The notes under the pieces are model-generated. The model saw nothing but the letters and a program-made list of their open reading frames with translations. It was not told the origin of the DNA and ran no database searches. A stretch of DNA of 63,876 nucleotides, counting the filler, from Octopus bimaculoides (Eukaryota), in the NCBI RefSeq assembly GCF_001194135.2. It is 4 parts of 4 records of this genome, joined end to end, with 100 filler letters (N's around TTAATTAATTAA, not from the genome) between each part and the next. Parts side by side here need not be neighbours in the genome. Positions count along the whole stretch, not along the records: positions 18,060 to 37,088 come from NC_068983.1; 3 more parts are not named here. One strand, given 5' to 3'. Positions 23,220 to 36,613 of the stretch are shown here, piece after piece. Positions within the stretch are counted from its first letter, which is position 1. Each line of letters opens with the position of its first letter. The position numbers and the translations under genes were made by a program.

Positions 23220-23673
23220 TTAATGGTGTCGAACAGAGATTGTCTTCGTGAGCCATTTGTAAAACTGACCAACGTTTGTATAGACGCCAAATGAATTACT
23301 TCGATCGCAGTTGTACCCCCAAGAGACAATACCAACCAATATCCAGCGTTTTGATTGAGGTAACAGTATAGTATAAGGGCCACCACTGTCTCCTTTGCAC
23401 GAATCTCCTTGATAAGTCCCATAAAATCCAGCACAGAACATATTCTTTGTAATGTTGTGGCCTTTAGCCAGACTTTTCCGACATTGGTTGTCTGATACAT
23501 AAGGGAGCTTGACTTCGTGAAGATGACGAGGGTAAGGGTTATAACCAAACGTTGTCTCGCCACAACCGACTACTGTTCCATAAAATCCACTGTAGAAGCT
23601 GTCTCCAATTATTTCGTTGTTCACCAAACACAATGGATGGACATCTGGTGTGAAGTCTAGAGTTTCTTTCAAA
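23220..23673 (-). CDS. Terminal exon of EGF-Ig-Ig-trypsin protease: C-terminal half of the trypsin domain (LKETLDF...GDSCKGDSGGP...GIVSWG...GVYTNV...RHH*)
   Basis: Acceptor tttattttgcag|T at 23673 (phase 2, completes GT|T=Val from the previous exon). ORF 23220-23672 contains the catalytic Ser motif GDSGGP, D189 and MFCAG. Stop TAA at 23220-23222. Confidence 0.96.
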
Positions 23674-23734
23674 CTGCAAAATAAAATAAAAAAATAACAG
23701 TTTTTTTATGTCTATGTAAATATATATGCATGTG

Positions 23735-23970
23735 TGTTATTTCTTTACTACCCACAAGGGGCTACACACAGAGGAGACAAACAAGGACAGACTAACGGAT
23801 TAAGTCGATTATATCGACTCCAGTGCGTAACTGGTACTTATTTAATCGACCCCGAAAGGATGAAAGGCAAAGTCGACCTCGGCGGAATTTGAACTCAGAA
23901 CGTAGCGGCAGACGAAATACCGCTAAGCATTTCGCCCGGTGTGCTAACGTTTCTGCCAGCTCGCCGCCTT
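23735..23970 (-). mobile_element. SINE family A, near-intact copy (intronic)
   Basis: Full head, body and 3' tail GTGGGTAGTAAAGAAATA on the minus strand. An identical copy lies at about 24115-24352 across a gap. Confidence 0.9.
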
Positions 23971-24887
23971 GATACATATATATACATGTATGTGTGTATG
24001 TGTGTGTGTGTGTGTGTGTGTGTGTGTGTGTNNNNNNNNNNNNNNNNNNNNNNNNNNNNNNNNNNNNNNNNNNNNNNNNNNNNNNNNNNNNNNNNNNNNN
24101 NNNNTATATGCATGTGTGTTATTTCTTTACTACCCACAAGGGGCTACACACAGAGGAGACAAACAAGGACAGACTAACGGATTAAGTCGATTATATCGAC
24201 TCCAGTGCGTAACTGGTACTTATTTAATCGACCCCGAAAGGATGAAAGGCAAAGTCGACCTCGGCGGAATTTGAACTCAGAACGTAGCGGCAGACGAAAT
24301 ACCGCTAAGCATTTCGCCCGGTGTGCTAACGTTTCTGCCAGCTCGCCGCCTTGATACATATATATACATGTATGTGTGTATGTGTGTGTGTGTGTGTGTG
24401 TGTGTGTGTGTGTGACTAAAAAATTTGTTTCTACACTGACATTCGCACTGACTTAGAAAAACCCCAGACTATCCCTTAACCCAAGATACCCCCTCGCTCT
24501 AACAGCTAATCACAGTTTTATACAGCACGAGGTATCAAATTATGGTGATGATCTTATAATAAACAGGAAGTCGTGAATCCAGTATATCGATACAACAAGC
24601 GTTCTTGAATCAGCTATGATACGATTCCCTCCACAAGAATGGAAGAATGGAACACAGTACCACCACGGTTAAACTTTCTGTCAATGCTAAACCACGCACT
24701 TACCTTATCATTTCGGACTACATCGACTACATTGAAACAATAACCCATTTTTGTCTTCGGCCATTTGACTATCACCATCACCATCACCATCACCGCAACA
24801 AACACACACATCAGTTAAGAATACAGAAAACACTCTCCTAAGAGAGGGGAAGGACAAAAAGAGAAGAGAAAGTAAAACATAACTTAC

Positions 24888-25108
24888 ACGATAACAGCAA
24901 TATCACTGTCATATGTGGTTTTATTAAAAGCTGGATGTACAATCCACTGTTTCATCTGAACTCTGATTCCTCCATAACCAGAGCAGTTCTGGGTGCCAAC
25001 ATACACATGTACGTTGTGATTATTGAAGTTTTTAAATGATCTAACACAATGAGCAGCTGTCACAATATGTTTATTACCGACCAGCGTTCCACCACAAAAC
25101 GAATGTTT
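24888..25108 (-). CDS. Exon: trypsin domain His57/Asp102 segment (KHSFCGGTLVGNKHIVTAAHCVRSF...VGTQNCSG...HPAFNKTTYDSDIAVI)
   Basis: Hand translation. Acceptor gtatttcaacag|AAA (phase 0), donor GT|gtaagt (phase 2). 221 nt = 73 codons + 2. Contains TAAHC and DIAVI. Confidence 0.96.
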
Positions 25109-25365
25109 CTGTTGAAATACAATGAAAGGATTATTGAAGTTACCGTTGAATTTTTATATTATTGTTTGATATCGTTATATATTATTTAATATCTTTTATT
25201 ACTTTCCCAAATATTATCATTGTTAATTTGACACCTTATTTTATAAATATTATATGATATTTAATCACATGAGATTTTTATATATTTATAGATATAAGTT
25301 TATAGATATTAGGGAGATGTACTTGCATAGCAAGTGACCTGATCTGAGATCGCGTGCTAGAACGA

Positions 25366-25560
25366 AAACAATTGCAGCGTGGAAGGTGTTTATAAGCCAT
25401 TTAAGAAACACACAAAAACCTTTAGATTTACTTCAACATTTAAATTTAATTTGCCAAATTTGCCAAATTTGGCAAATTAAATTTAAATGTTGAAGTTAAT
25501 CTAAAGGTTTTTGTGTGTTTCTTAAATGGCTTCTAAACACCTTCCACGCTGCAATTGTTT
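25366..25560. repeat. 195-bp near-perfect palindrome (foldback)
   Basis: Arms of about 92 bp with two mismatches around a TTTGCCAAA spacer. Confidence 0.9.
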
Positions 25561-26409
25561 TATAGATATTGCTTTAAAAAAAACACGTATGGTCCCCTAG
25601 CGGTTGCAAGCNNNNNNNNNNNNNNNNNNNNNNNNNNNNNNNNNNNNNNNNNNNNNNNNNNNNNNNNNNNNNNNNNNNNNNNNNNNNNNNNNNNNNNNNN
25701 NNNNNNNNNNNNNNNNNNNNNNNNNNNNNNNNNNNNNNNNNNNNNNNNNNNNNNNNNNNNNNNNNNNNNNNNNNNNNNNNNNNNNNNNNNNNNNNNNNNN
25801 NNNNNNNNNNNNNNNNNNNNNNNNNNNNNNNNNNNNNNNNNNNNNNNNNNNNNNNNNNNNNNNNNNNNNNNNNNNNNNNNNNNNNNNNNNNNNNNNNNNN
25901 NNNNNNNNNNNNNNNNNNNNNNNNNNNNNNNNNNNNNNNNNNNNNNNNNNNNNNNNNNNNNNNNNNNNNNNNNNNNNNNNNNNNNNNNNNNNNNNNNNNN
26001 NNNNNNNNNNNNNNNNNNNNNNNNNNNNNNNNNNNNNNNNNNNNNNNNNNNNNNNNNNNNNNNNNNNNNNNNNNNNNNNNNNNNNNNNNNNNNNNNNNNN
26101 NNNNNNNNNNNNNNNNNNNNNNNNNNNNNNNNNNNNNNNNNNNNNNNNNNNNNNNNNNNNNNNNNNNNNNNNNNNNNNNNNNNNNNNNNNNNNNNNNNNN
26201 NNNNNNNNNNNNNNNNNNNNNNNNNNNNNNNNNNNNNNNNNNNNNNNNNNNNNNNNNNNNNNNNNNNNNNNNNNNNNNNNNNNNNNNNNNNNNNNNNNNN
26301 NTCTTCTTCTTCTTCTTCTTCTTCTTCTTCTTATTATTATTATTATTATTATTATTATTATTATTATTATCATTATTATTATTATTATTATTATTATTAT
26401 TAAGCAGGA

Positions 26410-35051: not shown

Positions 35052-35574
35052 CTGAAATAGAAATTTTGAAAAAAAAAAAAATTATATGATCAGTACTGAA
35101 CAAAACTGGTTGAAAATTCGAAAACTATCAATTGCATGTCATACCTGTTTTGGCATGGTAATAATAGAATGTTTTCCTTTATTTGGCACCCAGGCTATTA
35201 ACACAGAGGGGACAAAACAAGGACAGACAAAACACCACAGTGGGGACAAAGAAAAACATAAAACGAATGAAAAAATGTAGAATGAAATCGATGGTGATGG
35301 AATGGCTGCATGCGCCCCACTCAAATGCAATACCATTTGAACGTTCTTACTTTCAGTTTGTAATCTTTTTCTTTTTTCTATTAGCATCATTTTGTTTACT
35401 CTTTTAAAAAAAACAAAAAAAAAAACAATTTTACTCTTTTTACAATATCTTATATATGGCTCTAGTTCCCTTAATTCTACTACTGGTGGCAGTTCGTCGA
35501 ACTCCACCACAAATCCCGACTGCTCAGTTTGACACTTTTCCTTCAACTTGCTATAGTTTTTACATTTTCACCGA

Positions 35575-35925
35575 CCAAAGCCATGTGAGTGGATTTGGTA
35601 GATGGAAACTGAAAGAAGCCCGTCGTATATATNNNNNNNNNNNNNNNNNNNNNNNNNNNNNNNNNNNNNNNNNNNNNTATATATATATATATATATATGT
35701 GTGTGTGTGTGTGTGTGTGTGTGTGTGTGTGAGTGTGTGTGCGTGTGTGTGTGTGTATTTGTCTGTCTGTGTTTGTCTGTCTGTGTTTGTCCCCCAACAT
35801 CGCTTGACAACCGATGCTGGTGTGTTAACGTCCCCGTAACTTAGCGGTTCGGCAAAAGAGACCGATAGAATAAGTACTAGGCTTACAAAGAATAAGTCCT
35901 GGGGTCGATTTGCTCGACTAAAGGC
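35575..35925 (+). mobile_element. SINE family B copy with an internal TA/TG microsatellite
   Basis: GGATTTGGTAGATGGAAACTGAAAGAAGCCCGTCG-(TA)n(TG)n-CATCGCTTGACAACCGATGCTGGTG...GGGGTCGATTTGCTCGACTAAAGGCG. Confidence 0.85.
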
Positions 35926-36267
35926 GAGTAATCAGCATTTAGTCACGGTTTATCTTATTGACTTTCGTTATGCTGAATGAAAGTAATAGTTTACAAAATG
36001 GAAATATTTAATTTAAATGAAATGAAATAAAACAAAGTTTCCATTTGCAATAAAGATATGCTAACAATAAAATATTTGTTATTGCCAGCAATGGCAAAGT
36101 ATGTTCTCAGGGTAATGCTATTGTAACCAAGGGAGATAAATCCATCCAATAAGATACAGAGAGTAACACGCTGTGTGTGTGTGTATGTGTTAATGTGTGT
36201 GTGTGTGAGAGAGAGAGAGAGAGAGAGAGAGAGAGAGAGAGAGAGAGAGAGAAAGAGAATTATCTTC

Positions 36268-36373
36268 ATCACGTTGAGAGCACCAGTTCTCGTCCGATCA
36301 CCGAAGTTAAGCAACGTCGAGCCTAGTGAGGACTTAGATGGGTGACCGCTTGGGAAACCTAGGTGATGTAAGC
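36268..36373 (+). pseudogene. 5S rRNA-derived sequence, 5'-truncated by about 12 nt
   Basis: ATCACGTTGAGAGCACCAGTTCTCGTCCGATCACCGAAGTTAAGCAACGTCGAGCC...GATGGGTGACCGCTTGGGAAAC...GTAAGC matches invertebrate 5S rRNA, including the internal control region. The 5' strand of helix I and a T-run terminator are absent. Confidence 0.85.
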
Positions 36374-36386
36374 GTCACACACTTTC

Positions 36387-36440
36387 AAAGGCGGTGCTCC
36401 AGCATGGCCACAGTCAAATGACTGAAACAGATAAAAGAGT
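36387..36440 (+). mobile_element. SINE family B 3' tail
   Basis: AAAGGCGGTGCTCCAGCATGGCCACAGTCAAATGACTGAAAC, shared with about 43869, 58682 and 34870. Confidence 0.8.
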
Positions 36441-36459
36441 AATAAAAGAAATGCCTCAC

Positions 36460-36613
36460 CTTCTCACAATTATATCCAATGTAACCCTCCGGACAAAGAC
36501 ATAGGTAACCAACTTTTCTTTCTCTACACGTTCCGCCATTTTTACAAGGTCCTTGCATACACCCCACAGGTAAGTCACACTGTATGCCTTGGAAGCCGTG
36601 AGGACATATACAG
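36460..36613 (-). CDS. Exon: second half of EGF-1 plus complete EGF-2 (CICPHGFQGIQCDLPVGCMQGPCKNGGTCRERKVGYLCLCPEGYIGYNCEK)
   Basis: Acceptor tgttgatttcag|C (phase 2), donor AAG|gtgagg (phase 0). 154 nt. Canonical C..GPC.NGGTC......Y.C.C..GY.G.NC EGF pattern. Confidence 0.93.

Follow-up and report, generated by a model that had tools for sequence, protein, structure and literature searches.

The stretch of DNA considered here, the window, comprises 63,876 nucleotides (filler included) of the Octopus bimaculoides genome (RefSeq assembly GCF_001194135.2). Its piece at positions 18060-37088 (NC_068983.1), AT-rich animal DNA with 36% G+C and ten runs of N, carries on its minus strand the 3' part of a gene for a modular serine protease. 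We hold with considerable confidence that this gene encodes a secreted zymogen built from three CUB domains, two EGF modules, two immunoglobulin (Ig) domains and an S1A protease domain (CUB3-EGF2-Ig2-S1A), that it belongs to the invertebrate Ig-bearing family of MASP-like proteases and that it would work by the mechanism proposed below. The window contains the 3' 502 codons of the gene, which would number about 920 if it is intact. The original prediction had described a modular, secreted, trypsin-like zymogen with a tethered heavy chain, and this appears still to be the best reading of the sequence.

Eight exons (E1-E8) run from 36613 down to 23220 in window coordinates. The introns between them start with GT and end with AG in seven cases out of seven, the split-codon bases entering and leaving the exons from E1 to E8 are 2/0, 0/2, 2/1, 1/0, 0/1, 1/0, 0/2 and 2/stop, and the spliced exons amount to 1510 nt that are translated into 502 codons followed by a TAA stop. 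The predicted exons, introns, phases and roughly 502 stop-free codons were reproduced exactly, and chance is ruled out as the source of the open frame and its domain matches. Letter for letter, the spliced product matches residues 22-523 of the O. bimaculoides RefSeq protein XP_014791221.2, so that the gene can no longer be called hidden, and aligns in one ungapped block with residues 422-923 of the 'MASP1-like' protein XP_036356941.1 of O. sinensis at 89% identity. The exons and their landmark residues are distributed as follows.

36460-36613, minus strand: E1, the final three Cys of EGF1 and all of EGF2 (CICPHGFQGIQC / DLPVGCMQGPCKNGGTCRERKVGYLCLCPEGYIGYNCEK)
34948-35051, minus strand: E2, first half of Ig1 (LKYVVEIEGNSSVKRLGNIVYTCRLNGMIPDKVFW), ending in the TG of a split Trp codon
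30528-30706, minus strand: E3, second half of Ig1 (YxC motif YMCVV) and the inter-Ig linker with Cys143 (TIEPTCRL)
28681-28817, minus strand: E4, first half of Ig2 (…GNVALNCPVTAYKGVRFTWQKDGHPL…)
27357-27498, minus strand: E5, second half of Ig2 (DNGTYKCLAVGPTECSATAEMSLDV) with the extra Cys220
26926-27044, minus strand: E6, linker Cys (VCGK, 27040-27042), activation peptide and start of the protease domain
24888-25108, minus strand: E7, histidine-loop disulfide (FCGG…TAAHC) with His57 (25049-25051) and Asp102 (24902-24904)
24983-24985, minus strand: the mollusc-specific Cys in GTQNC, within E7
23220-23673, minus strand: E8, remainder of the protease domain with the TAA stop at 23220-23222
23628-23630, minus strand: Cys122, within E8
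23562-23564, minus strand: Cys codon of GCG, where GWG is usual, within E8
23403-23405, minus strand: Asp189, within E8
23385-23387, minus strand: Ser195, codon AGT, within E8

Both codons said to be reconstituted across introns are real: TG/G at the E2/E3 junction encodes the Ig1 Trp, and G/TT at the E5/E6 junction encodes the Val that precedes the linker Cys. E1 is bounded by an AG acceptor and a GTGAGG donor; two split-codon bases enter it, it exits on a codon boundary, and its 5' partner exon lies beyond the edge of the piece. E2 matches O. sinensis residues 472-507 at 89% and is folded into beta strands in the AlphaFold model, with predicted local distance difference test (pLDDT) scores of 80-93. 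Conservation against O. sinensis is lowest in E4 (73% identity) and highest in E6 (97%). Two alternatives to this exon model were rejected. A stronger-looking acceptor nearby upstream of E3 would create an in-frame stop, and the orthologue favours the acceptor used. The stretch 31057-31132 on the minus strand resembles a second exon: it is free of stops, it lies between an AG acceptor and a GT donor, and its C…W spacing is Ig-like (…ASCKCHKHEGTLKSSWLW). Its entry phase, however, is mismatched to E1 and it is not found in orthologues; the true exon is 34948-35051.

Pfam recovers EGF, Ig, Ig and Trypsin in that order from the product spliced in silico, a check proposed beforehand. The EGF match in E1 scores 42.3 bits; Ig1 scores 24.9 bits as I-set (cut-off 23.7) and 29.1 bits as Ig_3, Ig2 scores 40.6 bits as Ig_3, and the protease domain scores 178.6 bits as Trypsin (PF00089, E = 2e-52). 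Of the architecture first put forward, EGF-EGF-Ig-Ig-trypsin, the Ig-Ig-trypsin order stands, whereas the two EGF modules do not both fit into the window, which holds approximately 1.3 of them because E1 begins partway through EGF1. The EGF region lacks a Ca-binding signature (EGF_CA scores 17.8 bits, short of its cut-off of 27, and a D-x-D/N-E-C motif is absent). No match to the complement control protein module (CCP; Sushi, PF00084) was detected, and the two Ig domains hold that position.

The protease domain retains an intact catalytic triad, His57 (TAAHC), Asp102 (DIAVI) and Ser195 (GDSGGP), and an S1 pocket with Asp189, Gly216 and Gly226 (GDSCKGDSGGP, SWGYNC, FGVY); together with the VCGK/HPLC cysteine pair, every residue named in the original prediction is present. 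Ser195 is encoded by AGT and Ser214 by TCT, and residue 225 is Phe in O. bimaculoides and Ile in O. sinensis. The predicted activation cleavage site lies between Lys255 and Ile (…NIEAK/IKSGYPA…, 26992-26997), in the same alignment column where homologues have Arg or Lys followed by I-x-x-G. When the two octopus species are compared, conservation peaks in the linker and activation peptide (96-97%) and is lowest in Ig2 (80%). The AlphaFold model has a mean pLDDT of 82 and comprises two beta-sandwich modules and the protease domain, with values below 50 in the activation loop, in line with its predicted exposure. Foldseek places thrombin as the best neighbour in the PDB (template modelling score ~0.9 over the protease domain); its top matches span the protease domain only, and it returned no solved structure in which an Ig pair is joined to a protease. 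Introns 6 and 7 interrupt the protease domain.

There are 25 cysteines in the fragment, three of which close EGF1 with partners upstream, while the remaining 22 form 11 predicted pairs. Beyond the standard set we infer three pairs from the sequence, Cys240-Cys367, Cys143-Cys220 and GTQNC-GCG (Cys320-Cys389). The linker Cys, Cys143 in the inter-Ig linker and Cys220 in Ig2 are conserved across the family. Mollusc members carry two extra cysteines, one in the GTxxC of their shortened 70-80 loop and one in a GCG motif that replaces the almost universal GWG; these suggest a disulfide peculiar to the clade, at the site of the Ca2+-binding loop of other proteases.

The gene extends beyond the piece, and what had been presented as its complete architecture is the C-terminal part of a longer protein. 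Pfam finds three CUB domains, EGF, two Ig domains and Trypsin in the 923-aa orthologue, and the full-length order in O. sinensis and O. vulgaris is signal peptide, CUB1-CUB2-CUB3, EGF1-EGF2, Ig1-Ig2, activation peptide and S1A protease. The sole strongly hydrophobic segment of the 923-aa orthologue is its N-terminal leader, with CUB1 directly after it. The 523-aa model XP_014791221.2 has no hydrophobic segment at all, and hence no counterpart of the signal-anchor of type II transmembrane serine proteases, which makes the RefSeq names of the O. bimaculoides gene, 'transmembrane protease serine 11B-like' and 'serine protease 41-like', misleading. Upstream of the piece edge at window position 37088 lies a region (L001, positions 1-13201, of CM046603.1) with the RefSeq gene 'tolloid-like protein 2' (XP_052822664.1), a three-CUB model whose end is separated by 32 bp from the beginning of the protease model. 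By tblastn, CUB2 and the first halves of CUB3 and EGF1 are colinear and on the same strand upstream of the piece. On the strength of these colinear CUB and EGF exons and the 32-bp spacing, the two RefSeq models represent a single gene that an assembly gap has divided. The tblastn search did not find upstream of the piece an exon for the second half of CUB3 (O. sinensis residues 361-405); it is probably contained in the N runs at L001 5878-6994 or 8267-8380. For curation this means that the 'tolloid-like protein 2' and 'TMPRSS11B-like' models should be merged into one MASP-like gene, with a CUB3 exon missing, presumably in an assembly gap, and an intron 7 gap that is an unmerged overlap.

The O. 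vulgaris gene models are frame-shifted in the last exon. In O. bimaculoides the E7 donor (24884-24890) has tandem GTs (ATC/GT/GTAAGT), and splicing at the upstream one puts E8 into another frame, which stays open for 44 codons (23542-23673, FERNSRLH…WL followed by a stop). This stretch is the exact C-terminus of the O. vulgaris model CAI9719421.1 (isoform X2), which is without Ser195 and is probably an annotation error.

The assembly gaps bear on whether the open frame is genuine. Seven fall between 23220 and 36613 (one of them at 35633-35677), and all are intronic, in introns 1, 2, 3, 4, 6 and 7; intron 5 (27045-27356) is the sole intron without a gap. The piece is 100% identical to CM046603.1 in the region 10059790-10096859, and the chromosome-level record has the same N runs; continuity across the gaps was judged by colinearity with orthologous proteins, not by DNA. 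Since the 502-residue orthologue alignment is ungapped, exon order, strand and frame hold across all seven gaps, and the interval 23220-36613 lacks no coding exon. One gap, in intron 7, has identical flanks; most of the others adjoin (TA)n, (GT)n or (TCT)n runs.

23723-24413: intron 7, 309-bp copies at 23723-24031 and 24105-24413, 100% identical, flanking the 73-N gap 24032-24104

The identical flanks indicate an unmerged contig overlap, which renders this gap spurious; the gap and one 309-bp copy are therefore artefacts, and intron 7 is ~382 bp shorter than assembled. With N gaps in six of the seven introns, one of them a proven artefact, with an upstream CUB3 exon that was not found and with two RefSeq models for one locus, it could be argued that the open frame is only apparent, in a locus that is either a pseudogene or a chimera of the assembly. 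We regard this as scarcely credible in view of 502 stop-free codons over eight exons in correct phases, an orthologue alignment without indels at 89% identity, the retention of all catalytic and structural Cys, His, Asp and Ser residues, and an activation peptide that has the highest conservation of all.

The secreted Ig-bearing zymogen has relatives well beyond the octopuses. The layout of two or three CUBs, EGF, Ig-Ig and protease is found in gastropods (Lymnaea, Nucella and Candidula) and in bivalves (Solemya, Potamilus, Argopecten, Dreissena and Mya); spiders and hemichordates combine CUB, Ig-Ig and protease, and more distant groups with Ig-bearing relatives include a mite, a sea spider, Lingula, a nemertean, holothurians and amphioxus. 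A HMMER search of 1.8 billion representative proteins returned no relatives at 50-87% identity and no squid or cuttlefish orthologue; the latter absence may reflect missing annotation rather than gene loss. Given the empty interval, the octopus protein is a divergent member, ~33-38% identical to those of other molluscs.

A neighbour-joining tree was built from 137 protease domains, among which the MASPs were represented by mammalian MASP-1/3 only, and its deep nodes are weak. The octopus protein and five mollusc Ig-bearing proteins form a clade (bootstrap 0.955); the wider Ig-bearing set is unresolved as a clade (0.12-0.17), and all Ig-bearing proteases, the prothrombins and some echinoderm proteases make up one weak cluster (0.17), outside which the mammalian MASP-1/3 are placed. 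The protease-domain scores are as follows.

Mollusc relatives: 178-205 bits (Mya 142)
Prothrombins: 165-179 bits
Factors VII, IX and X: 141-155 bits
MASP-1: 105 bits
MASP-3-type: 96-112 bits
Structures in the PDB: thrombin 159 bits (best), factor Xa 148 bits

Proposed beforehand as a check, the tree and BLAST comparison bears out the mollusc Ig-bearing clade and speaks against MASP-1/3 as the closest relatives, since these lie outside the cluster and score fewer bits. The features that define an Ig-bearing MASP-like protease are all found in the octopus protein: Ig-Ig directly before the protease, N-terminal CUBs, a place in the mollusc clade and the common cysteines.

We propose that the protein would be secreted as a single-chain zymogen and cut after Lys255, either by an upstream trypsin-like protease or by the zymogen itself, whereupon the new Ile N-terminus would turn the enzyme on. 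The CUB-EGF-Ig heavy chain would remain tethered through Cys240-Cys367 (Cys1-Cys122 in chymotrypsin numbering), and the active two-chain enzyme would cleave after Arg or Lys. The heavy chain would target the enzyme to partners and substrates: the Ca2+-site triad of CUB1 (Glu/Asp/Asp, kept in full) is of the type used by ligand-binding CUBs, and the Ig pair would occupy the place of CCP1-CCP2, the substrate exosite in MASP, C1r and C1s. The protease domain looks active and trypsin-like, and a regulatory role in extracellular limited proteolysis is likely; a specifically immune cascade role is possible, and the pathway could be complement-like C3 activation, clotting-like or another. A complement or a clotting role is suggested by homology.

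The predicted trypsin-like specificity would also suit a digestive or venom protease, for instance of the posterior salivary gland, and S1 proteases are abundant in cephalopod salivary glands. However, a 923-aa mosaic whose heavy chain is tethered and which has one conserved site for activation is built like a regulatory enzyme and not like a bulk digestive one, and its orthologues occur in non-venomous bivalves and snails, so that a digestive or venom role strikes us as highly improbable.

Several observations weigh against a secreted Ig-bearing zymogen of the MASP-like type. The P2' residue of the activation site is Lys (IKSG as against IVGG), which is unusual, although homologues also vary here (ISSG, ITKG), and a thrombin-like Na+ site is uncertain because residue 225 differs between the octopus species. 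CUB2 is without the Ca2+ triad and that of CUB3 is partial. The absence of the O. bimaculoides CUB3 exon may be a real lesion and not a gap. Residues 150-923 take up only ~26 kb in this assembly, and the orthologous genes of O. sinensis and O. vulgaris span ~156-158 kb; the gapped introns may consequently be badly undersized here, and the discrepancy would reflect either very long introns hidden by the N gaps or a species difference in intron size. Moreover, we infer secretion, activation and substrate alike from the sequence.

To these is added the affinity of the CUB array, which best matches cubilin, the neuropilins, PCPE-1 and NETO2 rather than complement proteases, with weak matches to MASP and C1s/C1r. 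This affinity is also in keeping with a non-immune secreted regulatory protease that would process matrix components or growth factors in development, nervous tissue or reproduction. Many CUB-bearing proteases have roles of this kind (tolloid-related, ovochymase-type and neurotrypsin-like), and the relatives of the octopus protease with high scores include ovochymases and multi-domain TMPRSS9-like proteins. The Ig pair is of the I-set type, as in adhesion and matrix proteins, and the family is kept across bilaterian phyla that differ in their complement repertoire. In contrast, the nearest vertebrate catalytic domains are haemostatic (thrombin and factor X), and a non-Pro residue 225 combined with an AGY serine codon is reportedly typical of clotting and complement enzymes. 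We consider a non-immune role of this sort possible, if on balance unlikely.

Our literature search for expression or function of the octopus MASP-like gene found nothing beyond a pathway figure legend mentioning MASP in O. vulgaris haemocytes (PMC4199593); a match in an O. maya white-body paper proved to be 'Maspardin', not MASP.

The introns of the gene contain repetitive elements as well. Intron 1 carries a sequence that matches 5S rRNA over its full length (RF00001, 73.6 bits, gathering threshold 38) and runs antisense to the protease gene; its promoter-like internal boxes are conserved, but terminal helix I contains mispairs. Microsatellites of (GT)n/(GA)n precede this sequence, and a tail of ~65 nt (36387-36451) that recurs twice upstream in the locus follows it. 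It is probably a short interspersed nuclear element (SINE) or pseudogene derived from 5S rRNA and not a functional 5S gene. A second, SINE-like interspersed repeat of ~234 bp is present in both orientations in introns and the 3' flank, with copies 75-94% identical to one another; ARAGORN found no tRNA-like head or tRNA gene in its window copies.

36258-36374, plus strand: 5S rRNA match, intron 1
23737-23970, 24119-24352, 19571-19738, 19797-19963 and 31281-31344, window: copies of the ~234-bp repeat
1364-1578, 7553-7786, 7786-7935 and 11068-11370, L001 (CM046603.1): copies of the ~234-bp repeat

The replacement of CCP-CCP by Ig-Ig, which the original prediction had set apart from the vertebrate architectures, is not new and is part of a published survey. 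PMC11312191 (2024) describes invertebrate MASP-like proteases (MASPLs) of several phyla in which two IG domains replace the two CCPs, includes 'O. sinensis MASPL' and a Euprymna scolopes MASPL in its Figure 3, and sets such proteins within complement evolution; the layout itself recurs across molluscs and in other phyla. The gene is accordingly known in two senses, being annotated in public databases and belonging to a surveyed family. No functional study of any Ig-bearing MASPL was found in the literature, and for the MASP-related molecules (MReM) of Gorbushin, which may be related to this family, the search gave citations only and no domain architecture.

The likeness to MASP-1, -2 and -3, C1r and C1s lies in a CUB/EGF zymogen with two beta-rich modules before the protease, in a single activation cleavage and in a disulfide-tethered heavy chain; the histidine loop is shared with MASP-1. 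The vertebrate proteins are CUB1-EGF-CUB2 with a Ca-binding EGF and two CCPs, whereas the octopus protein is CUB-CUB-CUB-EGF-EGF and has neither Ca-EGF nor CCP, and it parts from MASP, C1r and C1s in the strict sense by its CUB and EGF order, the lack of the CCP pair and, in the comparison with mammalian MASP-1/3, the closest relatives of its protease domain. In the AGY lineage the protease domain is encoded on a single exon, unlike that of the octopus gene with its two internal introns. The Ser195 codon AGT is of the AGY type that characterises the MASP-2/3, C1r and C1s lineage (as cited in PMC8605247).

The best-scoring characterised catalytic domains are those of prothrombin and factors VII, IX and X; residue 225 of the O. 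bimaculoides protein is aromatic and not Pro. The octopus protein has no Gla domain, no kringle and no thrombin 60-loop insertion, and the 70-80 loop is shortened in the mollusc clade. In the vitamin-K-dependent factors EGF1-EGF2 adjoin the protease, whereas two Ig domains intervene in the octopus protein. The grouping with prothrombin in the tree has a bootstrap of 0.17, and O. sinensis has Ile225. The literature search retrieved nothing specific on thrombin-like invertebrate proteases with Ig domains. A bolder view would see in the CUB3-EGF2-Ig2 family the missing C3-activating or clot-triggering enzyme of the haemolymph of cephalopods and other molluscs, its catalytic domain being the closest invertebrate relative of the prothrombin and clotting lineage. 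We give this little credence; if true, it would join a complement-style heavy chain to a thrombin-like catalytic domain as a living link between the vertebrate cascades.

In molluscs, the comparison with functional data behind it is Crassostrea gigas CgMASPL-1, the only mollusc MASP-like protein for which such data exist. It consists of four CUBs, three LDLa modules and a protease, without an EGF pair or Ig, and it binds lectin via CUB1, promotes C3 cleavage and has RNA interference phenotypes (PMC8605247). The original prediction's mention of oyster MASP-like proteins with Ig domains is not borne out for this molecule. In common with the octopus protein it combines CUBs with a trypsin-like protease domain, lacks CCPs, uses an AGY codon for the serine and has a histidine loop.

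CgMASPL-1 lends some plausibility to an octopus equivalent of MASP, whose CUBs would bind a lectin or C1q-like recogniser in the haemolymph, which would activate itself on microbes and which would cleave C3. Such an enzyme would share the heavy-chain logic of MASPs (CUBs, EGF, two small modules, protease), and RefSeq calls the orthologues MASP1-like. The Ca2+ triad kept in CUB1 is of the sort with which MASP and C1s grip the lysines of collagen stalks, and transcripts for C3, lectins and ficolin-like proteins are reported from O. vulgaris haemocytes (PMC4199593). Against an equivalence with MASP stand the module order (not CUB-EGF-CUB), protease-domain scores of 96-112 bits against mammalian MASP-1/3 as opposed to 165-179 against prothrombin, the position outside the MASPs in the tree and the different architecture of CgMASPL-1. 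We judge this equivalence doubtful. We know of no classical MASP, C1r or C1s in cephalopods; were its function established, the gene would provide a concrete candidate for the cephalopod C3-activating protease and an instance of Ig modules replacing CCPs as the exosite of a cascade protease.

The octopus zymogen shares with the surveyed MASPLs ('C1s-like') the CUBs, the optional EGF, the two Ig domains and the trypsin-like domain. Within that common plan the arthropod form is CUB-EGF-CUB-IG2-SP (PMC11312191), whereas that of the octopus and other molluscs is CUB3-EGF2-IG2-SP.

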